A stretch of DNA of 64,000 nucleotides from the sequence record MW735835.1; one strand, given 5' to 3'. The position numbers were made by a program, and so were the translations under genes. Shown piece after piece: positions 1,655-63,467 of the stretch (positions are counted from its first letter, which is position 1; every line of letters starts with the position of its first letter). The notes under the pieces are model-generated. The model worked only from the letters and a program-made list of their open reading frames with translations, ran no database searches and was not told where the DNA came from.

Positions 1655-1661
1655 CGGCAAA

Positions 1662-1689
1662 AGAGGAGGGCCAGTGGCCCTCCTCTATG
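1662..1689. terminator. Convergent hairpin with TATG flank
   Basis: AGAGGAGGGCCA-G-TGGCCCTCCTCT then ATGCTG, between the convergent ends at 1654 and 1695. Confidence 0.7.
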
Positions 1690-1694
1690 CTGTC

Positions 1695-1958
1695 TTACGG
1701 GATGTCCATATCACTGGAGCCTGTGGCTCCGTGGCCGCACGAGGCGACGCTTCCGACCCGAGTCACGGGAATGCCATTGATCGTCATCCAAGGACTTGCT
1801 GTGGAGATTACAGGGGCGTTGTGAGGGGGTTGTCCGTGGCCACTGACGCCATCACCCAGCAACGAGATGGGTTTACCGTTCCAGGTCCAATTGGGAGCGC
1901 CTGGTCCAGTGATCACAGCGCCAGCAGAGTCGGCTCCGACTAACGATACGATGCCCAT
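1695..1958 (-). CDS. PAAR-like tail spike tip protein (87 aa)
   Basis: MGIVSLVGADSAGAVITGPGAPNWTWNGKPISLLGD...GHGQPPH...INGIPVTRVGSVASCGH: PAAR-type repeats with His/Cys metal ligands. TGATG overlap with the spike stop at 1958-1960. Confidence 0.85.
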   Translation of the reverse strand: MGIVSLVGADSAGAVITGPGAPNWTWNGKPISLLGDGVSGHGQPPHNAPVISTASPWMTINGIPVTRVGSVASCGHGATGSSDMDIP

Positions 1959-2755
1959 CAGCTCATCCCTTTGAAGGTTGGCGTTACGAGAGTGGTGCCG
2001 CTCGCTTCCAAGGTGAAGACACTGCCTCCACCATTCAAAGTGATCTTCATCGCCTTGACATCGACGTTCTGATCGGCCTTGAGGAATATGTTCTGCGGAG
2101 CGTACCCGTTGATGTTGCGCTTGTTCAGCTCGAAGAATGTGCCCAGTTGGTTCATCAACTTGATGTGCACGTCCTTGGAATTGATGAAGCCGTAGTTGCC
2201 GAGGTTGTCCTGCGCGACGATCTTGCCATTGCCAGCGTCGATCTGAAGATCGTAGGTACAGTACTCGCCATTCATCTGGCTGGTGCTGATCGTGATGGTC
2301 TTGGAGTGGCTGGACCATTCGATGAAGTACATGTGTTCCGGGTCATCACCGGCCTGTTCCACCGCAGGGTTGGCATTGATGCCGAAGACTACGGTTTCCA
2401 GACGACGCAGGTTCTCATCGAGGTTCTGACAGCGCCAGTAGTACTTGTCGTTGCTACCGAATTGGTACAGGTCGATTCGTTCACCCCGACGTACGTTCGG
2501 CGGGGTCTTGCGGTTACCTTCTGGCAACCAGATGGCTGGGACAGTCTGCCCGACAAAGCTCTGACCAGCGGTTTCTTTACCTTCCAGGTTCTGGCCTTGG
2601 TACTCCAGGGTATCTACGCGATCGACGGTCTCGCCGTCTTGGAACCCCAGCTTCTCGTGGGAGTTGACCATGAGTTCGCGTGAACCCATCTTGAGGTTCT
2701 CGGCAGCAGTGCCGATGGCAACCCGCCGGAACATACTGACACCGTTATCGAACAT
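1958..2755 (-). CDS. Baseplate central spike (T4 gp5 / phiKZ gp164-like)
   Basis: OB-fold-like N-terminus (PPNVRRGERIDLYQF..YYW) and a beta-rich repetitive C-terminus; translationally coupled to PAAR. Confidence 0.75.
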   Translation of the reverse strand: MFDNGVSMFRRVAIGTAAENLKMGSRELMVNSHEKLGFQDGETVDRVDTLEYQGQNLEGKETAGQSFVGQTVPAIWLPEGNRKTPPNVRRGERIDLYQFGSNDKYYWRCQNLDENLRRLETVVFGINANPAVEQAGDDPEHMYFIEWSSHSKTITISTSQMNGEYCTYDLQIDAGNGKIVAQDNLGNYGFINSKDVHIKLMNQLGTFFELNKRNINGYAPQNIFLKADQNVDVKAMKITLNGGGSVFTLEASGTTLVTPTFKGMS

Positions 2756-2820
2756 AACAACCTCTTGTTTAACAAAACAGTACGGACCTATCCTACAGAA
2801 TTAGGGGAAGGACTCTATCA

Positions 2821-5636: not shown

Positions 5637-5642
5637 AGCAAA

Positions 5643-5674
5643 CATACGGGAGGGGCACTAGCCCCTCCCGTATG
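5643..5674. terminator. Convergent CATA...TATG hairpin
   Basis: CATACGGGAGGGGC-ACTA-GCCCCTCCCGTATG between convergent genes. Confidence 0.75.
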
Positions 5675-5679
5675 CTGCG

Positions 5680-9896: not shown

Positions 9897-9941
9897 CGGC
9901 ATAGATGGGAGGGACTCGTGCCCTCCCATCGACTTTTATGC
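9897..9941. terminator. Convergent hairpin with CGGCATA / TATGC flanks
   Basis: CGGCATA-GATGGGAGGG-actcgtg-CCCTCCCATC-gacttttatgc. Confidence 0.7.
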
Positions 9942-9948
9942 GCGTTGC

Positions 9949-18268: not shown

Positions 18269-18270
18269 CG

Positions 18271-18308
18271 GACATAGGGCCCAGGGCAGCTGCCCTGGGC
18301 CCTATGTC
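18271..18308. terminator. Perfect 38-bp palindrome between convergent genes
   Basis: GACATAGGGCCCAGGGCAG|CTGCCCTGGGCCCTATGTC, no U-tract. Confidence 0.75.
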
Positions 18309-18311
18309 GCA

Positions 18312-20396: not shown

Positions 20397-20437
20397 AAAA
20401 GAAAAGAGGTGTGAGGGGTGTTACCCCCTCACACCTC
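20397..20437 (-). terminator. Intrinsic terminator after the giant tail gene
   Basis: GAGGTGTGAGGGG-tgttac-CCCCTCACACCTC preceded by AAAAGAAAA, which is a U-tract on the minus strand. Confidence 0.7.
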
Positions 20438-39425: not shown

Positions 39426-39432
39426 CGACCAC

Positions 39433-40110: not shown

Positions 40111-40147
40111 CATCCAGCCGCTCTCGTAGCGGCTGGATGTTTATGCC
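40111..40147 (+). terminator. Hairpin plus TTTATGCC
   Basis: CATCCAGCCGCT-ctcgt-AGCGGCTGGATG-tttatgcc. Confidence 0.65.
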
Positions 40148-40182
40148 CTTAATTTTTTCTCTGATACCAAGGACGCACCACC

Positions 40183-40728: not shown

Positions 40729-40773
40729 TCCGCGAGTGGGGAGTGCGTTGACGCTCCCCTACTGAGGTGTCTT

Positions 40774-41289: not shown

Positions 41290-41301
41290 GGCCCAGCCAG
41301 C

Positions 41302-41670: not shown

Positions 41671-41675
41671 ATACT

Positions 41676-41709
41676 GGGGAGAGCGCTTGCTCTCCCCGCT
41701 ATGCCGTGT
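41676..41709 (+). terminator. Hairpin plus TATGCCGTGT
   Basis: GGGGAGAGC-gctt-GCTCTCCCC-gc-TATGCCGTGT. Confidence 0.7.
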
Positions 41710-41720
41710 CGATTGAAAAG

Positions 41721-41740
41721 TTTTACAGCAATACATGATA
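41721..41740 (+). promoter_or_regulatory. Candidate early-type promoter TTTTACAGCAATACATGATA
   Basis: Motif family member upstream of 41782. Confidence 0.6.
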
Positions 41741-41781
41741 GCAGTGAGTAACCACCATCCTATCCATCCTGGAGATGTATC

Positions 41782-43419: not shown

Positions 43420-43430
43420 TCCTGGACAGA

Positions 43431-43478
43431 CGGCATACAGGGCGCCCATTGGGCGCCCTGTATCCGTTTCTTTTTTTT
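43431..43478. terminator. Convergent hairpin: CGGCATA flank on one side, U-tract on the other
   Basis: ATACAGGGCGCCCA-T-TGGGCGCCCTGTAT (43435-43463) then CCGTTTCTTTTTTTT. Confidence 0.75.
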
Positions 43479-43492
43479 GTTTCCAGCAAGCC

Positions 43493-44359
43493 TTACAGCT
43501 TGATGAAGGTGCGGTTGAACTCCGCAACTTGCTCGGTGTAGCCCACGTTGTGCTTGGCCACGTCCGCTTCCACACCGGTCATGAAGGCCGGCTTCAGGTT
43601 CGGAGAGGTACCGGTCTTCGGCATCGCGTCCAGCAGTTGCTGAGCGAAGCGATCGACCGCGAGACCTACCTGCTGCATCCCGGTGAACGGGATGGACAGG
43701 ACAAGCTCCTCGCCATCGGCGGTCTTGTCACGACGGCCGGTGAAATCACCGGCAGTGGTCGGGTACATGTTGGTGATGAGCCACGCCGAGTTGACCTTGG
43801 TGAAGGACGGGTCCGGCTCGAAGGCGATGATGCTCATCGAGTAGATGTCCGGCAGCAGGTCGGTCGGGCGGTTGACGCGGGTAGCGATACCCGGCACCTT
43901 CGAATCCGGGTCCATGATCAGTTCGGTGATCCAGGATTCGAAGAACCGCTGAACCGGACGACCGTACTTCTCACGGATGGTCATCGAGGGGTCGGAACGC
44001 TGACGCGTCACGTTGCTCGGGGTCTGTTGCATTTCGCCAGCACCCGACACCGGCGCTTCGACGCTGTTCACAGTCAGGGTACGGTTGAAGCCGTCCCAGG
44101 TCTGTGCGTGCATCTCCACAATGCCCTTGAGGGCCTTGTAGTAGCTGTCCGGGTTGTCCAGGTATTGGAAACCACGCGGCGCTTGCAGAACCTTGATGAT
44201 CAGGTTGCGGCGTACGTAGTCGGTGTTGGCATGGAAGTAACGGAGGTCCGACTGGTAGGCGTTTTGACCGCCCAGTGCCAGGTTGACCATCGGCGAGTTG
44301 TTGTACTCGCCGTAACCCAGGCCGTTACCCAGGAGAGTGTCGCGATGACGGACGCCCAT
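43493..44359 (-). CDS. Tail tube protein (phiKZ gp30-like)
   Basis: Coupled (TAATG) downstream of the sheath; 288 aa; YVRRNLIIKVLQAPRGF pattern I recall from phiKZ-like tube proteins. Confidence 0.8.
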   Translation of the reverse strand: MGVRHRDTLLGNGLGYGEYNNSPMVNLALGGQNAYQSDLRYFHANTDYVRRNLIIKVLQAPRGFQYLDNPDSYYKALKGIVEMHAQTWDGFNRTLTVNSVEAPVSGAGEMQQTPSNVTRQRSDPSMTIREKYGRPVQRFFESWITELIMDPDSKVPGIATRVNRPTDLLPDIYSMSIIAFEPDPSFTKVNSAWLITNMYPTTAGDFTGRRDKTADGEELVLSIPFTGMQQVGLAVDRFAQQLLDAMPKTGTSPNLKPAFMTGVEADVAKHNVGYTEQVAEFNRTFIKL

Positions 44360-46419
44360 TATGCAGTCTCCGCACCAGAGGTACGACGGCCGGCAACGAT
44401 GGTCAGAACTTCAACCGTCTTCATGCCGTCGAACAGGCCTTCGATGTCCGTGTGCCAGCTGTAGCCGCGCTGGGTGTCAGCCGCGGTGTAGTAGGAACTC
44501 GGGGTGATGTCGGCACGACCGTCGTAACGATCCTTGATCTGCCCTTCGATGAAGCGGTCCACGTTCACCGCGTACTCGTCCGCAGTCATGCGGCTGTCGC
44601 CAGTGAACATGCGCCAGGCCAGCTCACCGATACGGTTGAGGTGGCAGCAGATCGCCATCGGGAAGAACGAGTTGAGGACCGACGTGTTGTCGTGGTAGAC
44701 GGTCTGGATACCCGGGAAGAACACTTGACCGCGATGGTCGAAGGGTTCGGCCGAGGAGATACCAGCTTGCCAGTCGGTGTTGCGCGGCTTGACCGGACGG
44801 AACTTCGCGTTGTGGTTCACGAAGCGGGTCACGACGCGGTAGGTGCTGTTGTCCGGCGCGTAGCCGGCACGCATGCGCTCGCCACCCATGTAGGTAGCGA
44901 CCTTGACCGCGAAGTCCACGGTGAACGGCAGGATGCCGTCGTACGGGGAGTCCAGGTACTCACCAGCGTGCTTCATGACGACAGCACGGCAGGCGCCGGT
45001 GTTGTAGAATTCCGACTCCGGCACGAGGCTCAGCGCGTTACGCAGCATGGCACCGATGCTGGAATCTTCTTCCGGGGTGTTCAGGGGCTCGTTGACGTCC
45101 TGAGTGGAAGCCAGGACCCACGCGTCCGGACGGACCGCCATGACGTTGGCCATCAGCTTCTTGGTTTCGAGGCTGAAGCCGGTGTCGATGAAGGCCGACA
45201 TCGGGAAGCTGGCACGGTCAGCGTACGGCACGTCGCCTTCGCCGAACACGTTCAGCTCGTCCTGGACCGCTTGGTCGTAGTCCTCACGGGTCACGTCGCC
45301 GTCATCACCGCCTTGCAGCCAGTGAGTGGCGGTCTCGCCGAACAGAACACCGTTACCGGCCGGGCCTTCCACCTTGACGGTGTAGTACGGCACGCCGTTG
45401 ATGTTCACGCCACCAAACAGGTTGATGGTTTGCTCGGGGGTGACTTCGCCTTCGATCAGGCCGTACTCTTCTTCGGTCGCGAAGACCTGGTCGAGAACGG
45501 TCTGGACGTGCTGGCTGTAGACGTAGAACGTCTTCAGCGGACCGTAGCCGGAGAACACCTCGGGGTCGTTGTTCTCGAACGCCTTGAGGATGCGCTTGTC
45601 GTAGCTGTAGTTGATGTTGGTCTTCGGATCGACCACACCGGTCTTCAGCGAGAACTCGACGGACGGATCGCCGTTCAGGTTCATCAGCACCTGGCCGGTG
45701 CTGTTCTGGTTCGCGCGTTCCAGAATCGACAGGCGGTACAGGAAAGCACCTTGGCTTTCTACCAGCTCGGCGTTGGCCGGGGTGCTGGAGTTGGTGGTCG
45801 GGGCCACCAGACGCAGACCGAAGTTCTTGCCCTTCGAACCTTCGAAGCGAGCTTCGATGTCGAAGAACGGGTACATGGTCGAAGCCTTGCCGTCGTAGTT
45901 GGTCATCAGACCAGTGGTCGGGCTGGCGTTGCGCACGCCTTCTTCGCCACCGATTTCCTCGACGGCCCAGCGGATGCGGTTGCCGTCCAGCGGTTCACCG
46001 GTTTCCACCAGTTGACCGTCGGTACGCTTGAAGCTGCCATCCGGGTTACGCTCGTACTGAGCGATCTTGTCGTCGACGATGTCGCACCAGACGCGCAGGG
46101 TAGCGGTCTTGGCGCCGTTCGCTTTCATACGACGGACCAGGGACATGGCGCCGGTTTGCAGAACTTTCTGCAACATGGCAGCCTGGTGGCTCAGGAACGG
46201 GGAGCCTGCGCCGAAGGAATCGGCACCGTAGATGGTGTTGAAGCCTGCACCCGAAACCAGCAGAGCGGTATCGGACGGACCCCAAGAGGTGAACAGCGGG
46301 GTCCAGGGCAGGAAGATCGGCAGATTGACGATCTCCAGCGGCTGACCCTGACCGCTCACATCTTTGAAACCGAGCACCTCAGTGCGCGGCAAAGACGAAG
46401 CCATCGAAACAGACGACAT
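44359..46419 (-). CDS. Contractile tail sheath protein (phiKZ gp29-like, about 686 aa)
   Basis: Size, sheath-type C-terminus (D..F....K..M, YSWH), paired with the tube; start reassigned to MSSVSMASS after a GGAG SD. Confidence 0.85.
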   Translation of the reverse strand: MSSVSMASSLPRTEVLGFKDVSGQGQPLEIVNLPIFLPWTPLFTSWGPSDTALLVSGAGFNTIYGADSFGAGSPFLSHQAAMLQKVLQTGAMSLVRRMKANGAKTATLRVWCDIVDDKIAQYERNPDGSFKRTDGQLVETGEPLDGNRIRWAVEEIGGEEGVRNASPTTGLMTNYDGKASTMYPFFDIEARFEGSKGKNFGLRLVAPTTNSSTPANAELVESQGAFLYRLSILERANQNSTGQVLMNLNGDPSVEFSLKTGVVDPKTNINYSYDKRILKAFENNDPEVFSGYGPLKTFYVYSQHVQTVLDQVFATEEEYGLIEGEVTPEQTINLFGGVNINGVPYYTVKVEGPAGNGVLFGETATHWLQGGDDGDVTREDYDQAVQDELNVFGEGDVPYADRASFPMSAFIDTGFSLETKKLMANVMAVRPDAWVLASTQDVNEPLNTPEEDSSIGAMLRNALSLVPESEFYNTGACRAVVMKHAGEYLDSPYDGILPFTVDFAVKVATYMGGERMRAGYAPDNSTYRVVTRFVNHNAKFRPVKPRNTDWQAGISSAEPFDHRGQVFFPGIQTVYHDNTSVLNSFFPMAICCHLNRIGELAWRMFTGDSRMTADEYAVNVDRFIEGQIKDRYDGRADITPSSYYTAADTQRGYSWHTDIEGLFDGMKTVEVLTIVAGRRTSGAETA

Positions 46420-46467
46420 TGTAATGTCTCCCATGGGAAAAAATTCAACTTCGCGCGTGAAGTTACG

Positions 46468-46476
46468 AATGGTATG
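46468..46476 (+). promoter_or_regulatory. Candidate late promoter AATGGTATG
   Basis: Exact motif copy facing 46584. Confidence 0.5.
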
Positions 46477-46536
46477 GCCCTTGCCTACATTTGAAAACGT
46501 AGGATTCGGTACTCGATGTGTTCGATACCACCACCA

Positions 46537-46545
46537 CATACTATT
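46537..46545 (-). promoter_or_regulatory. Candidate late promoter AATAGTATG
   Basis: One-mismatch copy facing the sheath gene. Confidence 0.45.
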
Positions 46546-46583
46546 TTGTTATTTTTTACTGGGTGCAACGGAAGAGGTAGAAG

Positions 46584-47519
46584 ATGATTACCAGTCCCTG
46601 GAATTCCACGGCCTTGCGCCAGCACAAGCTGGACAAGATTCTCAGTGAAATCGCCATCGCAAAAGCCATGGGCGCACTGATCAATGATGGACCCCGAGTC
46701 CTGCTGGTCACCCCGCTCGCCGAGAAGGTTGACGCCTTCGTTCTTCCGATTACCTCGGTCGAATACGCCGAGCGCAAGCTGAACGACAACGGCGCCGTGT
46801 TCATGGACGGTCGTTCGTTCATGCGCAAAGAAAACCGTAGCGACTCCGGCTTCGTGGTGAACAACCAGATGCAGGCTGACTTCTTCAACCGCATCGGTGA
46901 ACTCACTGCACTGTGGATTGCACAGCCGATCATGCGCGAAGACTTCATGCGCACCGGCGATATTGCTGCCCAGGTGTACATCTCCTGGCTCAGCAGTGCC
47001 ATCACCAACAAACTCGGTGTGGACTTGGAAGTCGCGCGCGAGATCCAGATCATTACTGCTGTTTTCTTTGCCCAGCAGTTCCACAGCGCCGAAGATTCCG
47101 TCTCCGATCGCGGTAAAGAGAAGTTCGTCAAGCTGATCCAGCGCTGGACTCGCCACCCGATTCAGCTCATTCAGAGCATCGTGGAAAGCCTGCCTTACAT
47201 GGAGCTGCTGAGCGACTTCGTCAAGGCCCTGCAAGAGCATTTCTCCCAGAACACCCGCGTGACTCAGGTCAACACTGGTTATTTGGTAATGTCTCTGGGT
47301 CGCTCCTGGTTCGGCTATGGCGCTACCGAGATCGCTTCGGTTGCTCTGGAATACCCACCGGTGTTCCTGGCTCTGGTCGAAGCAGCTGCCAACGCGAAGG
47401 TGTGGCGCAAGACCCATCTGGGCAAGCTGGTGGAAAACCTGAACCAAAGCCGTGCGGCAGAATCGTTCGCCCGGTCCATGGAGATTCTCGCTGGCGAAGC
47501 CCGGGGCTCCAATCGTTAA
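46584..47519 (+). CDS. Putative virion protein (311 aa; phiKZ gp28 position)
   Basis: GAGGT SD; first gene of the operon ending in terminase. Confidence 0.65.
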   Translation: MITSPWNSTALRQHKLDKILSEIAIAKAMGALINDGPRVLLVTPLAEKVDAFVLPITSVEYAERKLNDNGAVFMDGRSFMRKENRSDSGFVVNNQMQADFFNRIGELTALWIAQPIMREDFMRTGDIAAQVYISWLSSAITNKLGVDLEVAREIQIITAVFFAQQFHSAEDSVSDRGKEKFVKLIQRWTRHPIQLIQSIVESLPYMELLSDFVKALQEHFSQNTRVTQVNTGYLVMSLGRSWFGYGATEIASVALEYPPVFLALVEAAANAKVWRKTHLGKLVENLNQSRAAESFARSMEILAGEARGSNR

Positions 47520-47534
47520 TAGAAGGTGGACTTC

Positions 47535-50105
47535 ATGACCTCCGATGACTTTCTGATCGACCACGCGTACAAACACGTGTGGTGTGCGCCGGAGCAGGAC
47601 CGGCAGCACATCCTGCGTCCTGCGCGCATCAGCCCTAAAGTCGGGGCTCGTGGAAGTACTGACGTGTTGTGGAACACGTTCAACCTGCCCACCGAAAAAG
47701 AACGCTACCATGTCTTCCAGTTCGGCAACATCGCTCAGAGCAACCTTGATCTGAAGCTGACGCGGAACACCTGGACGAGCGCCAGCTCCCAGATGGTGGA
47801 CAGCATGATGCTGGTGGACATCTACACCGAAAGGGGGTTGATGATTCCGCGTCGGTTGGCGTACTTCCTGATGACCAACGATGGCAACATCGTGATTGCT
47901 GTGGAACACCTGCCGAACATCGGTGACTTCGGTCGCGAAGATATCTACGTTCGTTTCTACAGCAACCAGTTCTTCGCTCGTTTGGACGTGCCCGATGACG
48001 AAGAAGGCATCGAGTACCATTACGGCAAACCGGCCAGCACGGGTCAGCTGAACGCCCTGACGTTCAAGCTGCGCGACCTGCGCCTGAAGTCCGGTTACAC
48101 CTTCGCCTTCGTCAATGGCTGGCGAGTGAACGAGATCAACAACGCAACGGTGGCCATTGGTGACCGGGTGGAGTTGGTCCGTGACAGTTCCGTGGTGCGT
48201 GTAGAAGAGTTCGAGGTCAAAGACCTGCCGGTGTTCCTCTCCGAGTTCGACGAGTGCCAGAAGTACTTGATCCATTCCAAGGTTCCGAACGATGACCAGA
48301 TCTGGTATCGCGACGACCAGGACCTGTTCCTGTACTACAAGAAGACGCCGTTTGTCCACAAGGGCATTTATTACCACAAGAACCAGGAAGACTCCATCCG
48401 CATGGTCACGCATCGGGACTACTCGATTCCGACCGCGTACGTCGACCGGTTCCTGACGCAGAACCCCAACTGGGCGGTGAACAGCCAGCTCACGGTTCAG
48501 CTCGTGGTACGGCGCTCCGGCATGGACAAGGAGCTGATGAGTGAGGCTCACCACATCAAAGAACTGTACAAGTTCGATGACGCGGATTGGCTGGCTGCCA
48601 TCATCGGTACTGAGGCCGTAGTGGACGTGTGGCGGATCGAAGAACTCGAGAAGTCCATGTACACCGCGCTGATGCGCGCCCCTGCCGGTACCATCACCCG
48701 CGAGATGGTCGAAGCCGCTTATGGTTACAACACCATCGCCCGGATCGTGGCGGACACCCCTCAAAAGGTGCCCGGTCCCAAGCAGTGGGTCGAACTCCCG
48801 TTTGGCCTGCGTGGCGAAAGCACCATCTACGAGTACGACTCCTCTGGCAAGTTGCTCGGTTGGTACGCCAACCAGAACGTGCAGTGGTACGTGCCTCGGT
48901 CGCTGCGTTGCAGCTACATCGAAGGCATTGTGGGCAAAGGCACGGACGTGCTCAGCACGGTCTACGCTGGCAACCACAAGCCTGCCGCTGGCCTGACCTA
49001 TCGTTGCTACATCACCGCCATCGAGAACGGTTACCCCACCGGTGACTGGATCGACGTGACCGGGGATGACACCAAATACGACCTCATCGATGGGGAAGTG
49101 GTGTGGAAGGTCAACCCGCTGTTGTTTTACACCGCAATCAAGATGGACGATTCCTTCTTGACCTACAACCTCGAACTCGATTACGCGGACGGGTTGCTGC
49201 GGTTCAGTCTGAACGTGAAGGAGCTGCGCATCAACGGCATCCTTTACACCGGGCTGGTGGAGATCCCGGCAGGGTTGCTGGAGATCTGGTTGAACGGTTG
49301 CCCGCTGATCGAGAAACTCGATTGGTACATGGAAGGCAAGGAAATCGTCATCGTCAACAAGCAGTACCGCAACCGGACTGGCACGTCGAATACCATCACC
49401 ATTCGCCACACCGGCTTCTGCAACCCGGACATGACCCGGGTGAAAGAGTCGGAGTACGGTTGGGTGGAGAACGGTCTCCTGAGCCGGAACAACCGCTGGA
49501 ACCTGCGGGACGACAAAGTGGTGCGTGTCATCGCTGATGGCCGTATCTGGAGCCGAGAAGAATTGAGCTGGGCAGAAGACCGCCCAGAAGTGGTCTTGCC
49601 GGGTGTGCGCAATGGTGCAGCTTATCAGGTCACCGAACCGCTCATCCCGCTGCGCGGCGTGACGTTCGAGGATGCCTACGAGATGCGCGATGTGGCGGAA
49701 GCCACGGACAAGCAGATCGAGGATTACATGACCGAGCGTCTGGGTGAAGTCCCACCGCAAGAGTTCAACCCGATTCCGTTCCGCCACACGCTGTACAGTC
49801 CCTTCGTGGGCAAGCTGATGCATGACCTGATCAGCGGGTACTTCGATCAAACCCCTCTGACCGATTACTACAGCGACGTGGATGTGCGTAAGTGGTGCGA
49901 ACCCTACGTCTGGTTGCTCAAGTACGAGCCGACCAAGCGTAACCTCGACGAGCGGTACGTCGTTGTGGATGCGCATGAGCGCGTAGAGCCGTTCCGGCTG
50001 CCGATTCACCAGTACAACTTCTTGGCCCGCGCCATCAAGGTGATGCTGGACGACAAGATCGACATCACGCACTCGATTCTGATCGACCACCTGCCCATTG
50101 AATAA
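47535..50105 (+). CDS. Large virion/baseplate protein (phiKZ gp27 position)
   Basis: Long biased ORF; W..WCAPEQDRQ N-terminus typical of this family (from memory). ATG 47535 chosen over GTG 47526. Confidence 0.65.
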   Translation: MTSDDFLIDHAYKHVWCAPEQDRQHILRPARISPKVGARGSTDVLWNTFNLPTEKERYHVFQFGNIAQSNLDLKLTRNTWTSASSQMVDSMMLVDIYTERGLMIPRRLAYFLMTNDGNIVIAVEHLPNIGDFGREDIYVRFYSNQFFARLDVPDDEEGIEYHYGKPASTGQLNALTFKLRDLRLKSGYTFAFVNGWRVNEINNATVAIGDRVELVRDSSVVRVEEFEVKDLPVFLSEFDECQKYLIHSKVPNDDQIWYRDDQDLFLYYKKTPFVHKGIYYHKNQEDSIRMVTHRDYSIPTAYVDRFLTQNPNWAVNSQLTVQLVVRRSGMDKELMSEAHHIKELYKFDDADWLAAIIGTEAVVDVWRIEELEKSMYTALMRAPAGTITREMVEAAYGYNTIARIVADTPQKVPGPKQWVELPFGLRGESTIYEYDSSGKLLGWYANQNVQWYVPRSLRCSYIEGIVGKGTDVLSTVYAGNHKPAAGLTYRCYITAIENGYPTGDWIDVTGDDTKYDLIDGEVVWKVNPLLFYTAIKMDDSFLTYNLELDYADGLLRFSLNVKELRINGILYTGLVEIPAGLLEIWLNGCPLIEKLDWYMEGKEIVIVNKQYRNRTGTSNTITIRHTGFCNPDMTRVKESEYGWVENGLLSRNNRWNLRDDKVVRVIADGRIWSREELSWAEDRPEVVLPGVRNGAAYQVTEPLIPLRGVTFEDAYEMRDVAEATDKQIEDYMTERLGEVPPQEFNPIPFRHTLYSPFVGKLMHDLISGYFDQTPLTDYYSDVDVRKWCEPYVWLLKYEPTKRNLDERYVVVDAHERVEPFRLPIHQYNFLARAIKVMLDDKIDITHSILIDHLPIE

Positions 50106-50143
50106 CCTCAGGAGCACGGGGACAGTGTCCCCGTGATGAATAG

Positions 50144-51820
50144 ATGAGTACTGTCGACGATATCCCATTGGTGGGTGAGGTAAACCTCGAGCGAGGTTGG
50201 AAGATCTGGAACATGAAACAGATCTTCACCGGTCTGCCGGGTACTGGCAAGATCTGTCCCAACGTGGACGACCTGGTCATCGACCTCAAGACTGGCTGGT
50301 ACCTGGTGACCACCATCGACATTACCACCGGTAAGTGCACCATGATCCCGTGGACGCTGCCGATGGTCAGTCAGAACAACGTGGTCGTGGACCAACTGCT
50401 CGGCGTAGGCACCGGTGCTCAGTCCGAGACCTGGCGCGTCTACATCGACACCCGTCAGATGCCCTACTCGATGCAGATCGATGGCCGTCTGCACCTGTAC
50501 CGCAGCGATGCGGATCACTACAAGGTGTTCCTCGGCACTGACATCAGCGAGAACGGCACCCTGATCTCGGCGAGTTACTCGCCGTCGGGCGAATACCAGA
50601 ACGAGAACATCGGTCTGGAGCATGTTGGTGATGACAACATCAACAACTGGGCCATCTGGGCTCCGAAAGCAGGCAACACCAACCGCCGCCTGAACAACGG
50701 CGAAGTGGTCACGGTGGTGCTGTACAACGCTGTCGGCAATGCGCTGAGCCATTCGTCCATGCTGGTGGAAAACACCACGCTGGTACGCCGTACTGCGGCT
50801 GGCCTCAAGCACATCAAGTCCATCGGCATCAGTTCGCCGTACCTGTCGGAATCCGACCCGTCTCAACTGGTGGTCCCGATCAACGTGGACCTGCGTACCG
50901 TCACCCTGACCGGTGTCGTGCGCTACAACACCGGTGAAGAACTGGAAGTGCCGATCGTTCAAGACGGTACCGGCAAGATGTCCCTGCACGGCCTACGGTG
51001 GTATTCGCCGACCATTCAGTCGTACCCGCACAAGCTCACCCTGAGCTACCGTTTGAGCGAGGATGAGTTCTCTCTCGAGCACGGTGTGACCGAAGAAGGC
51101 TACATCACCGAACCGTTCACCATCAAGGCTGTAGCGGCAGAAGGCGCTTATAGTGTGCGGCTCTACGCCTTCCCGACCTGGAATTCTCCAGCGTCGCGTT
51201 ACGACCTGGATTTCTGGCTCTTCAATATCGACCGCGACCAGTACTACCGTGTACCGCGTTCGATCGTGGAAATCCCGGACAACGAAGTGGCCTTCGACGG
51301 CTCCGACTTCATCTCGCGTCAGCGTCTGAAGTTCGGCCTGCTCCTGAGCAACGTCGATCCGATTTTCCCGCAACACAAGTTCGTGCAGTCTGCTGAGATC
51401 GCTCTCAACAAGGCTGGCTCGGAAACCGGAGACAAGTGGCAGGTCAAGTGTGACCCGTCGCAAGAGAAGTTCTTCGGTGCGGGTGTGATTGCGAAGAACC
51501 GTTTCGTCAACGTCAACCTGTCGTACCTCGATCTGAAAGCGGGTGCAGCCGACCTCGATGCTTGGCTGAACAAGATCTACTACCCGCTCAACCATCTGTT
51601 CGACGACACCAGTGAAGTCCGTGCGCCGGAACCGACGCACTTCATCATTCACACCAAGACCCGCGAATATCCGTTTGCGGTGTCTCAGTGGAATCAGGAA
51701 TTCCCGATTCTCAACGATGTGACCATCGGCGAGACCATCTACCTGCGGTGGGTGCGGGAAACCTCCAGCGGCCAGCTTCAGCTGGGCGTGACTGGTCTGG
51801 CTATCGAACAGAGCAACTGA
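50144..51820 (+). CDS. Virion protein (558 aa; phiKZ gp26 position)
   Basis: Beta-rich ORF directly upstream of terminase. Confidence 0.65.
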   Translation: MSTVDDIPLVGEVNLERGWKIWNMKQIFTGLPGTGKICPNVDDLVIDLKTGWYLVTTIDITTGKCTMIPWTLPMVSQNNVVVDQLLGVGTGAQSETWRVYIDTRQMPYSMQIDGRLHLYRSDADHYKVFLGTDISENGTLISASYSPSGEYQNENIGLEHVGDDNINNWAIWAPKAGNTNRRLNNGEVVTVVLYNAVGNALSHSSMLVENTTLVRRTAAGLKHIKSIGISSPYLSESDPSQLVVPINVDLRTVTLTGVVRYNTGEELEVPIVQDGTGKMSLHGLRWYSPTIQSYPHKLTLSYRLSEDEFSLEHGVTEEGYITEPFTIKAVAAEGAYSVRLYAFPTWNSPASRYDLDFWLFNIDRDQYYRVPRSIVEIPDNEVAFDGSDFISRQRLKFGLLLSNVDPIFPQHKFVQSAEIALNKAGSETGDKWQVKCDPSQEKFFGAGVIAKNRFVNVNLSYLDLKAGAADLDAWLNKIYYPLNHLFDDTSEVRAPEPTHFIIHTKTREYPFAVSQWNQEFPILNDVTIGETIYLRWVRETSSGQLQLGVTGLAIEQSN

Positions 51821-51830
51821 TAGGGGCATG

Positions 51831-51866
51831 GGGCTGTCGGGGAAACCCGACAGTCCTGTGTGCCGT
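51831..51866 (+). terminator. Hairpin with GAAA loop plus TGTGTGCCGT
   Basis: GGGCTGTCGGG-GAAA-CCCGACAGTCC-tgtgtgccgt. Confidence 0.6.
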
Positions 51867-51901
51867 TCGACGCGATTTGACCAATCGCCTAGGGAAAGAC
51901 C

Positions 51902-54121
51902 ATGGAAACAATTCTCTTCAAGCGGGACTGGGACCGATACCCGACCGCGATTTGGGACCTCGAGACCAAGAACGAATCGTTCCTCGAATTCTCAGCCTTG
52001 CTGAAACACATGGGCGTCGAGAACCATCTCTTCATGCTTGCGCTCATGCAGCCAGACCTGCAAGGTGTCGACCCGTTCGACCCGTTCTTGACCGAAGAGC
52101 AAAAGCTCAAGATCAAGATCGAATGTACGTTCAACCCCTGGTACTTCATCCGTGAAGTGATGCGCGTACCACCAGCTGCGGGTGACACCCCGATGAAGCT
52201 GGAAGCCAACCGGGGCAACATCTCCTTGTGGTGGAGCTTCCTCAACCACATCGACTACTTCCTCGTGCAGATCCGTCAGACCGGTAAGTCGCTGAACTCT
52301 GACGGTATCTCCGTGTGGTACCAGGTCTTCGGTGCCCGTAACTCCCGTTCCAACTTGTTCACCAAGGGTGACTTGTTCAAGGAACACATTGCCCGTCTGA
52401 AGAAACTGCGGGGCTTGCTGCCCAAGTATCTGGTTAACATTGTCAAGAAGGACACGGACAACCAGAAAGAGTTCACCAACATGTCCCAGGGCAACCGCAT
52501 GGTGGTGTACATCCCGCAGAAAGACGAAGAAGCCGCCCGTAACCTGGGCCGGGGTCTGACTACCCCGCACAGCCACACTGACGAAATTGCATTCTTGAAG
52601 AACGTGCACATCTCGCTCGGTGTTATGCTGGCAGGTGGTGGTGCTGCTCGTGAAGAAGCGGCACGCAACGGCCTCCCGTACGGCAACATCTTCACCACTA
52701 CTGCTGGCGAACTGGACACCAAGGAAGGGGCTTACGCCTACGACCTGATGACCGGTGGGGCAGAGTGGAACGACAGCTTCTACGACTGTGCCAACAGCAC
52801 GGAACTGTACGAAGTCGTCCGTAAGCAATGCCGCAACAAAGACGCGATCCTCATCAACGGTACCTTCAACCACAAACAGCTCGGCAAGACCGATGCGTGG
52901 CTGCGGACCAAGATCGCTGAATCCCGTCAGACTGGTGACGAAGTCCGCCGTGACTACCTCAACGAATGGACCTCGGGTAACGCCCGAAACCCGCTGTCGA
53001 AAGATACCCTGCGGAAGATCCATGCGTCGGTAACCAAACCCACCTACCTCGAAATCGACAAGATGGATCACTACTCCATCCGTTGGTACATCCCGCAGTG
53101 GGAAGTCGAGGCTGGGATACCGAACCGTGAACTCACCATGGGCATGGATACATCCAACGCCGTGGGTCGAGACAACATCACTGGTGTGATCATTGACAAC
53201 AGTACCCTCGAGGTCGTGGGTGCGTGGACGGTCAACGACTCCAACCTCACTGTGTTTGCGATGTGGCTCGCCAAGATCCTCGTCCGCTTCCAGAAACTCA
53301 CGATGGTGCCCGAATCCAAGTCTACCTGGATCGGTATCCTCGACACCCTGTTGCTTACGCTGCCGACCCACAAGATCGATCCGTGCAAACGGATCTACTC
53401 GACCTTGGTGGATGCCAAGGACCAGTCGCCAGATGACCGTAGGCGTTACCACGAATACATCGGAGACCGGGACAACTACCGGTCGTACCGCAAGCACTTC
53501 GGTTTCCCCACCAACTCCCAGCTGCGTGAGATCATCTATGGTCCCGTGTTGCAGGAAGCGGCGAAGAAGACCGGTGCAGTGGTCCGCGATGCCAAACTTC
53601 AGGCAGAACTGTCGCGCCTCGTAGAGCGGAACGGTCGAATCGACCACGATGCCTCGGGTCACGACGACCACGTCATCAGTTGGTTGCTGTGCCACTGGTT
53701 CCTCACCTATGGCCGCAACCTCGAGCACTACGGCATTACCCTCAGTGAAGTGAAGCGTCGTGTATACGAAGCCGAACACAAGCTGTCCTGGGAAGAACAA
53801 CGCCGTTACGACCAGCAGCAAGACATCCGTGACGAGATCACTCAAATCGGTGAGCGCATCAGCCAAGAACGCAACACGTTCGAGCGGATCAAGCTTCAGC
53901 ACCGCTTGGAACTCTTGCTTCTGCAAGTCAGTGACGAGTTCGAAATGGAAGGGGCACAATCCCTAGACCAGATCAAGGAGAACAGTCGTGAGAAGTTGAA
54001 TATCGTCAACCGGAACTTCGGTCCGGGACGAGAACTCGAATTCGAACGACCGCTCAACTTGAACATGACGCAGCGTCGAGCCTATTCGATGCCGAGTCGC
54101 CAGAACGTGGTTGTTTGTTGA
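51902..54121 (+). CDS. terL: Terminase large subunit
   Basis: Walker A QIRQTGKS, Walker B HTDEIAF, nuclease MGMDTS...RD and HDDHVISW; uninterrupted. Confidence 0.92.
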   Translation: METILFKRDWDRYPTAIWDLETKNESFLEFSALLKHMGVENHLFMLALMQPDLQGVDPFDPFLTEEQKLKIKIECTFNPWYFIREVMRVPPAAGDTPMKLEANRGNISLWWSFLNHIDYFLVQIRQTGKSLNSDGISVWYQVFGARNSRSNLFTKGDLFKEHIARLKKLRGLLPKYLVNIVKKDTDNQKEFTNMSQGNRMVVYIPQKDEEAARNLGRGLTTPHSHTDEIAFLKNVHISLGVMLAGGGAAREEAARNGLPYGNIFTTTAGELDTKEGAYAYDLMTGGAEWNDSFYDCANSTELYEVVRKQCRNKDAILINGTFNHKQLGKTDAWLRTKIAESRQTGDEVRRDYLNEWTSGNARNPLSKDTLRKIHASVTKPTYLEIDKMDHYSIRWYIPQWEVEAGIPNRELTMGMDTSNAVGRDNITGVIIDNSTLEVVGAWTVNDSNLTVFAMWLAKILVRFQKLTMVPESKSTWIGILDTLLLTLPTHKIDPCKRIYSTLVDAKDQSPDDRRRYHEYIGDRDNYRSYRKHFGFPTNSQLREIIYGPVLQEAAKKTGAVVRDAKLQAELSRLVERNGRIDHDASGHDDHVISWLLCHWFLTYGRNLEHYGITLSEVKRRVYEAEHKLSWEEQRRYDQQQDIRDEITQIGERISQERNTFERIKLQHRLELLLLQVSDEFEMEGAQSLDQIKENSREKLNIVNRNFGPGRELEFERPLNLNMTQRRAYSMPSRQNVVVC

Positions 54122-54123
54122 TG

Positions 54124-54163
54124 CGGCATACAGGGCAGGCCACTTGGCCTGCCCTGTATGTTG
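54124..54163. terminator. Convergent CGGCATA...TATG hairpin
   Basis: CATACAGGGCAGGCCA-CT-TGGCCTGCCCTGTATG at 54127-54160. Confidence 0.75.
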
Positions 54164-55039
54164 TCAGTGCGTTTCCAGCCACACCAGCATGCGCAGGTGG
54201 TTGGCGATGGAGCGTGCTCGGGCGAACAGTGCACAGAGGATCTCGCTGTTGAGCGGGTTCTGCATTTCACGGTCAATGAACTGGATGATCCGATGGGGTT
54301 CTTCATCGGTTCTGGCCAACTCACGGAACGATTGCAGTTTGGAGATCTCGACATCCATGGGTGGAAACACTGCGTCGATCTGATCAGCTACTGCATCGAA
54401 GCGTGCGGCCCAATGGACCATCGACTTGGCTTTCTCCGCATCCAAGCGGATCGGGTAGGCCGATTGACCGTAGTCAGGGCGCTGAGGGACCTGGAAGGTC
54501 ACCAGAACGTCACCGCGGAACGGAGAGACCTTGACCAAGGGTGCCTTCTCGCGCATGCCCAGTAGGCACGGCCGGACTTCCGAGAGGATCTCAGCAGCCG
54601 TCTTAGGACGACGAGCGAGTTCGACATCCTTGTTGATGACGTCGAGGCGGTAGGTGGTCATCTGCGCCCAGCCCAGGAAGGCAAAGATCCGAGTCTGCAC
54701 CATGCCAATGATGACCTGGTACATCTTGACCTCGGCCTCCAGTGCTCGGAACACCGCATCACCCAAAGGCTCACCGCCCAGCATCAACCAGGCGGCTACT
54801 GGGGTCTCGAATGACTTGGCCTCCTTACGGTACTCAGCCCGATCCAACCACTCATCCGTGTAGTGGTACTCCGACCCAGGGCGATTCCATGGACCGCTGG
54901 TGATCTTCTGAGTGCCGTAGATCGACGGCAATTCAAAACTACCAAAGATACGACCGAACTTCGACTCGGATTCCATGGAAACTCCAGCAGTCTCCTCACC
55001 TGCATAATTGGCACGCAGATACGCTTCGACGGTGGTCAT
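54164..55039 (-). CDS. Putative head protein with short propeptide (291 aa)
   Basis: N-terminal EETAGVSMESES matches the protease motif. Confidence 0.6.
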   Translation of the reverse strand: MTTVEAYLRANYAGEETAGVSMESESKFGRIFGSFELPSIYGTQKITSGPWNRPGSEYHYTDEWLDRAEYRKEAKSFETPVAAWLMLGGEPLGDAVFRALEAEVKMYQVIIGMVQTRIFAFLGWAQMTTYRLDVINKDVELARRPKTAAEILSEVRPCLLGMREKAPLVKVSPFRGDVLVTFQVPQRPDYGQSAYPIRLDAEKAKSMVHWAARFDAVADQIDAVFPPMDVEISKLQSFRELARTDEEPHRIIQFIDREMQNPLNSEILCALFARARSIANHLRMLVWLETH

Positions 55040-55041
55040 TG

Positions 55042-56304
55042 TTAGCTTTTCCTGTAATAGCTCATGGTGATGGTCCGTGCCACGATGTACAGGATGACGC
55101 CTGTCCGGATCGAGTTCACGAGGTTGTCGTTCTTGGTCTTCACGGCCTTGCGGATGATCTTCTCGCCCACGGTGCGCATTTGCATGAGCAGGTCGTTGTT
55201 CGAACGCGAGGCCTTGTACAGGTTGCTCAGTTTCGACAACAGGGCGGGGATGTCATTGGTGCGGATGGTGTTGCGGTTAGCCGCAATGAAGTCGAACAGG
55301 TGCTCGAGCGTCAAGTCTACCAACTTGGCCACATCAGGATCGCCCTTGAGTTTGGACGACTTGCTGGTGATGTACTCCAGTGCCTGGACCATGTTGTGGA
55401 GCGGCAGTTTTGGCATGGTGGATGCCACGATCTCGACCAGCTCCTGCACAATGAAGCTGTTGCGGTCAACGATGATCTCGTCGAGGTAACGACGATAAGT
55501 GGCGTACATGGACTTCTTGTTCTTGACGACCACTTCACCGTCCATGTTCACCGTGGTGTTGCTGTTGGTGCGGATCAGTGCAGTGGGATCGCGACGAACG
55601 ATCTCGAACTCATCCCGGATGTTCTTCAGGTAGCCTTTGATTCGGCCCTGGATGTCGTTCACCATGTAGATGATGTCGTAGTCATCGTCGAACTTCTGGT
55701 ACGTCTTGTTCTTGGTGTGCGGGGACGCCGCTTCCACGGTGGCCTCGGCACGGTACTGAAGCAGCGCGCCCCAGCTACCCAGTTCCTTGAGCTTGTACTT
55801 CTTCGGCAGGCGGGCATAAGTCGCCACAGCGACCGCTTCGTCAGCCCGGTTGGGGAACCAGTAAGCCAAGATCGAGGTGATGAACTTGTATTCCAGGATC
55901 AGCAGGGTGTCGATGATCGCACTGTGCTTTTCCTTGTCGTTCAGGTGGGTGGAATTGAAGATCTTGTGGACGACCCAGAGGCACGACAGGTTCATCACGT
56001 CCGTGGAGACGTAACGGACCTTCTTGGGATCGGGCACCAAGGTCGACAGAGTGAGCAAGTCTTCCTGAAGCGACACATCATCGATGTCAAGCACGGTGGC
56101 GAACCACTCGTTCCGGTCAGCACGGGTGAAACGGACATCTTGAACGCCCATCAAGTGACCGCCGAAGAAGGCTACGTGATCGTCGTTCTTGTTGGCAAAG
56201 TTTTGCCGGTACGTCTGAAGACGTCTGATGAAGGTGCGGTCTGCGACGATGTGCGAACCTGCCTCGTCAAACAGCGACTTCACATTGGGGGCGGGGGTTG
56301 ACAT
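55042..56304 (-). CDS. Conserved-type hypothetical/virion protein (420 aa)
   Basis: Start reassigned to MSTPAPNV (TATG context, CAGGA SD); helical. Confidence 0.7.
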   Translation of the reverse strand: MSTPAPNVKSLFDEAGSHIVADRTFIRRLQTYRQNFANKNDDHVAFFGGHLMGVQDVRFTRADRNEWFATVLDIDDVSLQEDLLTLSTLVPDPKKVRYVSTDVMNLSCLWVVHKIFNSTHLNDKEKHSAIIDTLLILEYKFITSILAYWFPNRADEAVAVATYARLPKKYKLKELGSWGALLQYRAEATVEAASPHTKNKTYQKFDDDYDIIYMVNDIQGRIKGYLKNIRDEFEIVRRDPTALIRTNSNTTVNMDGEVVVKNKKSMYATYRRYLDEIIVDRNSFIVQELVEIVASTMPKLPLHNMVQALEYITSKSSKLKGDPDVAKLVDLTLEHLFDFIAANRNTIRTNDIPALLSKLSNLYKASRSNNDLLMQMRTVGEKIIRKAVKTKNDNLVNSIRTGVILYIVARTITMSYYRKS

Positions 56305-57577: not shown

Positions 57578-57614
57578 CATAGAGCCTAGGGATCTCCCTA
57601 GGCTCTTTTCTTTT
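57578..57614 (+). terminator. Intrinsic terminator
   Basis: AGAGCCTAGGGA-TC-TCCCTAGGCTCT then TTTCTTTT. Confidence 0.8.
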
Positions 57615-59260: not shown

Positions 59261-59294
59261 CATAGCGGAGGGCCTAGGCCCTCCGCTTATGCCG
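59261..59294 (+). terminator. Perfect 24-bp palindrome plus TATGCCG
   Basis: CAT-AGCGGAGGGCCTAGGCCCTCCGCT-TATGCCG. Confidence 0.75.
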
Positions 59295-60630: not shown

Positions 60631-60637
60631 CGGAATA

Positions 60638-60683
60638 AGAGCCGGGGCATGCGCCCCGGCTCTAGTCCTTCTTTTTTTCTTTT
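60638..60683. terminator. Intrinsic terminator between convergent genes
   Basis: AGAGCCGGGGC-atgc-GCCCCGGCTCT then a T-rich run. Confidence 0.75.
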
Positions 60684-62359: not shown

Positions 62360-62365
62360 TCGAAC

Positions 62366-62385
62366 TTTCCACAATGATACATTAT
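62366..62385 (+). promoter_or_regulatory. Candidate early-type promoter TTTCCACAATGATACATTAT
   Basis: Motif family member upstream of phuZ. Confidence 0.6.
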
Positions 62386-62427
62386 CTTTGTGCACATACT
62401 TCAACCACCTCCGTGAGGAAGCAACAC

Positions 62428-63420
62428 ATGAATCAGAACAACGGCCTCTCTACCCGCCCCGTCGGCAAGATCCGCATCTACGGTTGCGGTGGTGGTGGCG
62501 TGAACATCGGTAAGGAATACCTGGATCAGGGTCACAGTGGCGACATCGCCAACATCGAGGCCTGCTTCATCGATACCTCCGACGCCAACCTGGAAGACCG
62601 CCTGATCGACAAGACCTGGCTGTTCGACGACCTCGATGGCTCCGGCGCCGTTCGCCAGACCAACGTGGCCGCCATCCAGAAAGCAATTCCCGACATCATC
62701 CGCAAGTTCCCGGCGGCCGACGTCAACATCGTGATCTTCACCCTGGCCGGCGGCACCGGCTCGGTCGCAGGTCCGCTGCTACTGCAACAACTGCTGGCCG
62801 ACGGCCACATGGCGGTCGCCATCGTCATCGGTGCCAAGCACTCCGGCCGTAACGCCGAGAACACTCTGGCCACCGTCAAGACCCTGGACGCCATCCGTCA
62901 CGTCACCGGCAAGCCGGTCGTCATGCACCTGGGCATCAACTCCACCAACGCGCCGACCGATGACGGCGTGGACCGTGAAGCTCATCTGATGATCACCTCG
63001 CTGGCCATGCTGTGCTCCCGCCGTAACCATCGCCTGGACACCGCCGACCTGCGTTCGCTGTTCGACTTCACCAAGTCCACCAGCGCCCCGGCTCAGATGT
63101 GCCGTCTGCACGTGACCGACAACACCGAAGCCTTCAACAAGGTGATGAAGACCGGCCCGCTGGCCGCTGCGTACCTGCTGCGCCAGTCCACCGACCCGGT
63201 ACCGGATCTGTTCGTGCCTTACAGCACCTACGGCACCATGCCGGCCATCGCCCAGGCCAGTGGCAGCCTGTTCTTCGGCATCGAGAGCGGTTCGATGGTT
63301 GAACTGCACAAGCTGGTCGCTGACCTGCAAAAAGAAGTCGAAACCCAGAAGCGGGCGGCTACCCAAGCCACCAACTTCGTCGATGCTCCGCCGGCCGGCG
63401 GCAGCGTCCTGGTCTTCTGA
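62428..63420 (+). CDS. phuZ: Phage tubulin PhuZ (330 aa)
   Basis: GCGGGGVNI, IDTSDAN, tubulin signature AGGTGS, T7-loop LDTADL; start reassigned to MNQNNG after a GAGGA SD. Confidence 0.93.
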   Translation: MNQNNGLSTRPVGKIRIYGCGGGGVNIGKEYLDQGHSGDIANIEACFIDTSDANLEDRLIDKTWLFDDLDGSGAVRQTNVAAIQKAIPDIIRKFPAADVNIVIFTLAGGTGSVAGPLLLQQLLADGHMAVAIVIGAKHSGRNAENTLATVKTLDAIRHVTGKPVVMHLGINSTNAPTDDGVDREAHLMITSLAMLCSRRNHRLDTADLRSLFDFTKSTSAPAQMCRLHVTDNTEAFNKVMKTGPLAAAYLLRQSTDPVPDLFVPYSTYGTMPAIAQASGSLFFGIESGSMVELHKLVADLQKEVETQKRAATQATNFVDAPPAGGSVLVF

Positions 63421-63427
63421 CCCACAC

Positions 63428-63467
63428 GGACTGTGGAGCTAACCCCTCCACAGTCCTTATGCCGTGT
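63428..63467 (+). terminator. Hairpin plus TATGCCGTGT
   Basis: GGACTGTGGAG-ctaaccc-CTCCACAGTCC-t-TATGCCGTGT. Confidence 0.7.

Follow-up and report, generated by a model that had tools for sequence, protein, structure and literature searches.

The window analysed here comprises bases 62001-126000 (64,000 nucleotides, nt) of Pseudomonas phage pPa_SNUABM_DT01 (hereafter DT01; MW735835.1; 265,520 bp; 56% GC) and carries, at gene ends, long GC-rich hairpins followed in the direction of transcription by the word TATGCCG or a variant of it. The annotation of MW735835.1 includes the subunits of phiKZ-like virion and non-virion multisubunit RNA polymerases (vRNAP and nvRNAP), the tubulin PhuZ and phiKZ-like head proteins, and DT01 is therefore a phiKZ-like, nucleus-forming jumbo phage. 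The hairpin-TATG elements are very probably factor-independent transcription terminators of the phiKZ type; their placement, strand polarity, selection at the RNA level, covariation, family-wide conservation and agreement with the published RNA ends of relatives are established below. The paper describing the DT01 genome makes no mention of promoters or terminators, and the present analysis adds about 45 predicted terminators to this genome that are absent from both the record and the paper and are missed by predictors relying on a U-tract.

Elements in the window

The gene ends in question carry the following predicted terminators (window positions; the strand of each tail is given in parentheses).

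1655-1692, two-way terminator: hairpin 1660-1688; tail (+) TATGCTG 1686-1692 behind PA10_00070 (stop 1654); tail (-) TTTGCCG 1655-1661 behind an unannotated PAAR-like open reading frame (ORF) ending at 1695.
5640-5677, two-way terminator where genes 73 (+, stop 5636) and 74 (-, ends 5680) converge, with the palindrome 5641-5676 (CATA...TATG) and the tails TATGCTG 5671-5677 (+) and TATGTTT (-).
9897-9944, two-way terminator: hairpin 9902-9932; tail (-) TATGCCG 9897-9903 behind gene 79 (-, ends 9949); on the + side, U-rich CTTTTATGCG behind gene 78 (stop 9894).
18270-18309, two-way terminator built on an 18-pair palindrome (18271-18308): gene 89 (stop 18268) is followed on the + strand by TATGTCG 18303-18309 and gene 90 (-, ends 18312) on the - strand by TATGTCC 18270-18276.
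38682-38725 (+), terminator behind gene 99 (stop 38677): 16-pair palindrome 38685-38718, CATA...TATG; tail TATGCCG(TGT) 38715-38721.
40111-40148 (+): gene 103 (stop 40092) is followed by hairpin 40111-40139 and the variant tail TTTATGCCC, in which TATGCCC occupies 40142-40148; a T6 run comes next.
41676-41710 (+): gene 106 (stop 41670) is followed by hairpin 41676-41697 and the tail TATGCCG(TGT) 41700-41706, no CATA pairing.
43431-43479, mixed two-way terminator around hairpin 43433-43465: the tail-tube gene 108 (-, ends 43493) is followed on its strand by TATGCCG 43431-43437, and gene 107 (stop 43419) has a classical U-tract, 43467-43479, on the + side.
51831-51865 (+): gene 112 (stop 51820) is followed by hairpin 51831-51856, which has a GAAA loop, and the variant tail TGTGCCG 51859-51865.
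54124-54163, two-way terminator whose palindrome, 54127-54160, separates the terminase gene (+, stop 54121) from gene 114 (-, ends 54164); tails TATGTTG 54157-54163 (+) and TATGCCG 54124-54130 (-).
59264-59294 (+), terminator behind gene 120 (stop 59260): hairpin 59264-59287; tail TATGCCG 59288-59294.
60631-60678, mixed two-way terminator with hairpin 60638-60663: gene 126 (-, ends 60748) has the variant tail TATTCCG 60631-60637 on its strand, and gene 125 (stop 60630) a delayed U-tract on the + side.
63426-63467 (+): gene 128, for the tubulin PhuZ (stop 63420), is followed by hairpin 63426-63458 and the tail TATGCCG(TGT) 63458-63464; no upstream CATA; hairpin and tail are kept in relative R1.

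Seven of these 13 elements lie between convergent genes, the clearest two-way palindromes being those at 5641-5676, 18271-18308 and 54127-54160. An earlier note on this DNA, made from the letters alone, had placed TATGCCG right after GC-rich hairpins at 38715, 41700, 59288 and 63458 on the plus strand and at 9897, 43431 and 54124 on the minus strand, the latter three each at the end of a minus-strand gene, and all of these were verified, as were the variants at hairpin feet: TATGCTG at 1686 and 5671, TATGTCG at 18303, TATGTTG at 54157, TATGCCC at 40142, TGTGCCG at 51859 and, on the minus strand, TTTGCCG at 1655. The minus-strand gene end that the note assigned to 1655 exists and lies at 1695; the gene concerned is the unannotated PAAR-like ORF and not the annotated spike gene, which ends at 1958. 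The reported absence of poly-T holds for the cited sites with the exception of 40142, where there is a T6 run 9 nt further on.

Census of hairpins and tails

The DT01 genome was joined from seven annotated pieces and its genes were called with a self-trained codon-usage script, which returned 297 genes against 310 annotated; the stops in the window, checked by eye, agree with the record. Hairpins were detected with one mismatch allowed and a loop of 2-9 nt, and a hairpin orientation was termed sense when it lay behind a gene end on the same strand and antisense when it had the opposite orientation.

The bare word shows no clear enrichment in the window (TATGCCG, nine copies against 4.2 expected; TATGYYG, 20 against 17.5), and two further copies of TATGCCG, at 69-75 (-) and 455-461 (+), are intragenic, lack a hairpin and are ordinary chance copies. 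Twelve of the 20 TATGYYG words are found at the 3' foot of an intergenic GC-rich hairpin, where 0.10 would be expected (P = 2.5e-23; word start at -8 to +6 from the 3' end of an intergenic hairpin with at least nine pairs). The succession of hairpin and TATGCCG at gene ends is thus real and far above chance. GC-rich stem-loops starting 1-30 nt behind a stop codon, on the strand of the gene, number 119 genome-wide and 26 in the window. TATGYYG accompanies 11 of the 26 sense orientations in the window and one of the 16 antisense; genome-wide it occurs in 39 of 119 sense, five of 137 antisense and two of 1416 intragenic hairpins (Fisher p = 2.6e-10, sense against antisense), bearing out the strand polarity that had been claimed. 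A motif-free count of k-mers around the 3' end of the stem leads to the same word: those overlapping TATGCCG rank at the top, with TATGCCG itself observed 22 times against 0.13 expected.

In the 39 DT01 copies, the letter following TATGYYG is most often T (19/39) and the position of the first T in TTAT is taken by C or T. The description of a hairpin followed by TATG is correct as to placement, but TATG itself forms the 3' part of the palindrome, paired with an upstream CATA, in 23 of the 39 copies, while the tail is fully unpaired in eight. The hairpins are predicted to be very stable (mean fold energy -28 kcal/mol, z -6.7), and the 9 nt preceding the invariant G contain on average 3.7 T. Approximately 13-20 other DT01 gene-end hairpins bear a true U-tract instead of the TATG tail, and in some two-way elements a U-tract on one strand is combined with a TATGCCG-type tail on the other (43433-43465, 60638-60663). 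A search of Rfam gave zero family matches anywhere in the window.

Correspondence with known terminators

For phiKZ, Putzeys et al. (2024, microLife; PMC10914365) obtained 133 termination sites by ONT-cappable-seq, and 61 intrinsic terminators of this phage share a stem-loop followed by TTATKYYGT, with the consensus end GGGRRGGBYTTATKYYGT (PMC10914365). The terminators given in the supplement consist of CATAA, a GC-rich stem (CCCTCCC/GGGAGGG), often with a UUCG loop, and TTATG-Y-Y-G-T; convergent phiKZ genes carry mirrored terminators, of which the pairs T012/T013, T018/T019, T059/T060 and T070/T071 are built like the DT01 palindromes (PMC10914365). Motif A of 201phi2-1 is the same motif and accounts for 59 of 132 termination sites (PMC11512511).

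When the published coordinates were placed on the genomes of the two phages, the RNA 3' ends fell inside the tail. For phiKZ, for which about half of the published tables were used, 31 of 32 ends lie 0-6 nt from the first T of TAT(G/T/A), mostly at +2, +4 and +5. All eight 201phi2-1 terminators tested in vivo have a hairpin and a TATG-like tail (six strict TATGYYG, the others TATGACG and TATACCG), and the mapped end is on the base just before G in seven and one base earlier in the eighth. All eight stop expression in uninfected P. chlororaphis, four better than lambda T0, two equally well and two more weakly (PMC11512511). The proposal that the signal is specific to phage RNA polymerase is therefore not supported as it stands: at least in its U-richer form, the signal is not exclusive to the phage enzymes.

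Judged from its sequence, the DT01 hairpin-TATG element is the same signal as these RNA-end-mapped terminators and is not new as a motif. It shares with the phiKZ terminator the GC-rich hairpin directly behind genes, the succession T-A-T-G/T-Y-Y-G-T, the palindromic CATA(A)...(T)TATG at convergent genes, the frequent UUCG loops and the dozens of copies per genome, in phages that both possess virion and non-virion multisubunit polymerases. In contrast to phiKZ, the DT01 tail begins with C/T-C/T-TATG (CTCTATG, CTGTATG) and not TTTATG, prefers CCG and has much fewer U, and the stems are longer, reaching 18 pairs. Motif A and the A/B combinations of 201phi2-1 have the same build of hairpin and TTTATGYYG; there, RNA ends just before G and the stems are elongated when the second motif is added, and the terminators act in uninfected P. 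chlororaphis, whereas the DT01 tails contain fewer U. What stands of the dedicated termination code suggested in the earlier note is a set of gene-end signals that very probably mark transcript stops, with a conserved, strand-polar and U-poor tail (3.7 T in 9 nt); its novelty does not, the code being that of phiKZ and 201phi2-1.

The same census was run on the whole genomes of phiKZ, 201phi2-1, RAY, LucasX, FLC9, DT01, Xoo-sp14, PaBG and SPN3US (AR9 has too few GC-rich gene-end hairpins to be scored). Sense hairpins with TATGYYG were found in all seven chimalliviruses, at 20-50 copies each, over a range of 37-58% GC (phiKZ 37%, 201phi2-1 45%, RAY 50%, LucasX 55%, FLC9 56%, DT01 56%, Xoo-sp14 58%); in each of them antisense copies are several-fold rarer and intragenic copies nearly absent. 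The combination is absent from PaBG, an unrelated P. aeruginosa jumbo phage (0/40), and from SPN3US (0/70), both of which use U-tracts. Between phiKZ and the GC-rich phages, the T content of the 9 nt ahead of the invariant G declines from 4.8 to 3.3-3.7. The stop signal of the AT-rich phiKZ has thus been kept letter for letter in GC-rich relatives and in an uncultivated DT01-like clade, described below, without the look of a U-tract. The arms of the hairpins also divide the phages: the purine fraction of the 5' arm is 0.72-0.81 in DT01, FLC9, RAY and Xoo-sp14 and 0.28-0.30 in phiKZ, 201phi2-1 and LucasX, giving two groups with opposite purine/pyrimidine arm polarity and an identical tail.

Selection and evolution

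Among hairpins with a single sense orientation in the seven phages, the loop reads TTCG 130 times and CGAA twice, and GNRA 42 times against four for its complement; in DT01 alone, TTCG occurs 21 times and CGAA not at all. This strand bias points to selection, and hence function, at the level of RNA.

The terminase gene end could be followed through an uncultivated DT01-like clade in IMG/VR, with terminases 54-90% identical. In 27 of 27 loci a hairpin flanked by CATA and TATGYYG is located 0-13 nt behind the stop codon or just overlaps it. The earlier note had called for a covariance analysis across related genomes; this was run on the terminase-end orthologues (20 distinct sequences, from DT01 and 19 uncultivated relatives), and the stem was found to covary. 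In this set 98% of the cells are paired, compensatory double changes occur in nine of 15 pairs and the covariation score reaches 0.516, where shuffles give 0.163 (0/500). Exactly four pairs never vary, those of CATA:TATG, and the G of YYG is likewise invariant. PhuZ, tried as a second orthologue set, yielded only five loci and was replaced by the comparison with one whole relative genome given below. A covariance model built from 34 paralogous copies was discarded, as MAFFT merely right-aligned the copies because their stems differ in length.

A complete uncultivated relative of 276,554 bp shares 223 reciprocal orthologues with DT01 at a mean amino-acid identity of 62%. At 30 orthologous gene ends where DT01 has a TATGYYG terminator, the relative keeps TATGYYG in 19 and a one-letter variant in six; at three more, missed by the script, inspection revealed a hairpin ending in TATG, in two cases as TATGCTG. 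The stem sequences have often been replaced between the two phages. At co-directional sites the upstream CATA is sometimes lost and the tail kept (genome positions 191511 and 221830), which confirms the polarity.

Proposed mechanism

In the proposed mechanism, a very stable GC-rich RNA hairpin, in many copies with a UUCG or GNRA loop, would form 0-30 nt behind the stop codon, and the transcript would be released a few nucleotides later inside (C/T)TATG(C/T)(C/T)G(T), which would take the place of the U-tract. By analogy with phiKZ and 201phi2-1, RNA ends would form at these DT01 sites, either at UAU or at the pyrimidine preceding the invariant G. Multisubunit polymerases have a consensus pause element, G-10 Y-1 G+1, and the pyrimidine-then-G step of the tail may be a place where they tend to pause. 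At convergent genes the full palindrome, CATA-stem-loop-stem-TATG, would stop transcription both ways, since each of its strands reads as a hairpin plus TATG. During infection, the enzymes meeting these signals would be the phage vRNAP and nvRNAP.

Several points weigh against termination as described. The mapped RNA 3' ends are those of relatives, phiKZ and 201phi2-1, rather than of DT01, and the ends obtained by ONT-cappable-seq could in part be processing products. About one third of the DT01 gene-end hairpins have neither the tail nor a U-tract. Moreover, the classical weak-hybrid mechanism may not suffice for the DT01 tail, because this contains only about 3-4 U in 9 nt.

Classical Rho-independent terminators and the DT01 elements have in common a hairpin 7-9 nt upstream of the release point (predicted in DT01) and two-way forms with complementary flanks, but the DT01 tail is a fixed word and not a U-run. 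When 36001-56000 was scanned in the standard way for hairpins with a U-tract, no TATG-tailed element was detected and only two U-tract elements were found; the TATG-tailed elements in this region lack the classical signature of at least five T in the 8 nt right after the stem. DT01 also possesses a minority of true U-tract terminators, some sharing their hairpin with a TATG tail on the opposite strand. This sister class includes the following elements in the window.

39435-39469 (+), behind gene 102: hairpin 39435-39462, then TTTTTTGCCC, a classical U-tract ending in GCC.
20406-20437 (-): hairpin with U-tract.
57579-57608 (+): hairpin with U-tract.

As a separate observation on 36001-56000, matches to sigma-70-type promoters are depleted (one found, against 6.6 expected from shuffles), which fits a phage that makes no use of the host polymerase.

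Alternative explanations

A reading that would refine the terminator interpretation rather than exclude it is that the tail is a stop word recognized by the phage polymerases themselves. In nucleus-forming jumbo phages TATG would then mark both start and stop, with TATGYYG read base-specifically by a phage polymerase, possibly through its promoter pocket; we regard this as conceivable but doubtful. One such route would use the β-lobe pocket of the gp123-like subunit, the reader of the late-promoter TATG: by catching the non-template TATG it would pause the enzyme behind the hairpin and make a U-tract unnecessary, allowing GC-rich phages such as DT01 to terminate without one. TATG is unchanged between 37% and 58% GC while the U content of the tail falls, and pairing alone does not explain the invariance of CATA:TATG in the orthologues, since the rest of the stem covaries freely. 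The phiKZ gp123 binds non-template TATG base-specifically (PMC12809450), and in the DT01 homologue, recovered with BLAST and phmmer, eight of 14 pocket residues are identical, including the stacking residues F151, H185 and H331, with Tyr406 replaced by Phe, in an alignment at only about 30% identity. In SPN3US, where the tail is absent, the pocket is more diverged. However, the eight 201phi2-1 terminators of the same type work with the host polymerase in uninfected P. chlororaphis (six of them with a strict TATGYYG), the pocket is stated to be incomplete in the transcribing complex (PMC12809450), and the same tail stands behind genes that are early in phiKZ, such as that of PhuZ, where it is presumably read by the virion polymerase. 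DT01-type terminators are a good substrate for asking whether the tail is read as a word or only acts as a weak hybrid. They would also be compact and strong candidate insulators for Pseudomonas synthetic biology, as has been done with those of 201phi2-1.

An unlikely alternative to termination is that the elements are sites of RNA processing or 3'-end protection, at which read-through RNA is cut or trimmed to a blunt, nuclease-resistant CATA...TATG hairpin. Pairing of CATA with TATG would indeed leave a nearly blunt stem of 13-18 bp as the mature end, and 3'-end sequencing in phiKZ and 201phi2-1 cannot by itself separate termination from trimming. The terminator-trap assay of the eight 201phi2-1 elements, however, lowered the downstream reporter to the degrees given above; the eight DT01 copies with an unpaired tail keep the same word; and the invariant G lies beyond the mapped RNA end in the relatives, fitting a signal read at the level of DNA or polymerase.

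Still less probable, and in our view very unlikely, is that TATG at the hairpin foot is a late promoter, so that the element would stop and restart transcription or give rise to antisense RNA. In phiKZ the core of the late promoters is TATG with G as +1 (PMC4666361), the gp123 pocket is largely conserved in DT01, and at six co-directional elements of the window the next start codon follows 27-102 nt downstream. The re-initiation suggested in the earlier note nevertheless finds no counterpart in phiKZ over the stretch compared, 19.8-118 kb: of 48 TAT(G/T) sites adjoining a hairpin, none is within 2 nt of a same-strand mapped start, and the promoters that follow are 6-58 nt downstream. In DT01, the location of seven of the 13 window elements between convergent genes makes such a use unlikely there, because a start would only produce antisense RNA, and the conserved letters extend beyond +1 (YYG, often followed by T) while the loops are RNA-optimized on the sense strand. 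The late promoter core of phiKZ (Yakunina 2015; Chen 2026) shares with the DT01 terminator the same four letters on the non-template strand; the promoter TATG has no hairpin of this kind before it, the terminator TATG is not used as a start in phiKZ and the DT01 terminator word continues to YYG(T).

The DT01 late promoters probably also use TATG, because eight of the 14 pocket residues are identical and Tyr406 is changed to Phe. As a general promoter signal in DT01, TATG was set aside: its non-hairpin copies upstream of genes (39 sense, 25 antisense) give too weak a bias. One other promoter-like feature was noticed, a box, (G/C)ATACATTATC, with an upstream T-rich patch, which occurs in the window at 14083, 39501 and 62378 (+). 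Genome-wide, TACATTA has 21 copies, 16 of them intergenic by our own gene calls, and most point toward a gene start on the same strand 16-105 nt away. The box precedes the PhuZ gene, a gp105-like gene (genome position 136925), an nvRNAP-like β/β' operon and other genes; it may be the early or middle promoter of DT01.

That the elements act as DNA, whether by forming a cruciform, by serving recombination or packaging or as mobile palindromic repeats, is barely credible. Copies within a genome do share stem sequence (GAGGGAGG / CCTCCCTC), and metagenome relatives show a loop flip at 41685-41688, but no strand-symmetric function could produce the strong strand bias of the loops (UUCG 130, CGAA 2) or that of the tail with respect to the preceding gene. 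In addition, copies occur at gene ends only, and orthologous copies change their stem sequence while keeping the pairing.

Environmental relatives and neighbouring genes

The public sequencing runs that match DT01 are all metagenomes; in four of them, two RNA-labelled, the Logan contigs are short pieces of relatives with patchy cover and reveal no usable RNA ends. DNA near-identical to 38000-44000 of the window (up to 89% of sampled 31-mers) occurs in estuary, soil, tobacco and wastewater runs from eight studies, and IMG/VR holds about 25 contigs of the DT01-like clade, ten of them 250-277 kb in length; DT01, an 'orphan' phage, therefore has many uncultivated relatives. At 38683-38722, the match to contigs from one wastewater and one soil run is confined to the hairpin and TATGCCG, with unrelated sequence on both flanks; one of these contigs lacks 2 nt symmetrically in each arm. 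This terminator module therefore occurs in other genomic contexts as well. At 41685-41688 the loop changes from GCTT to its reverse complement AAGC in two soil-metagenome relatives with the same stem and tail; the hairpin loop is thus flipped, a change of the sort that recombination between the palindrome arms would give.

The unannotated ORF at 1695-2318 (-), chiefly its part at about 1695-1950, follows directly on the gene annotated as central spike/baseplate (1958-2755, phrog_3216), and 7 nt separate its end from hairpin 1660-1688. Its residues 129-204 match the PAAR-motif family phrog_281 (E = 9e-15), and it is probably a missed spike-tip gene.

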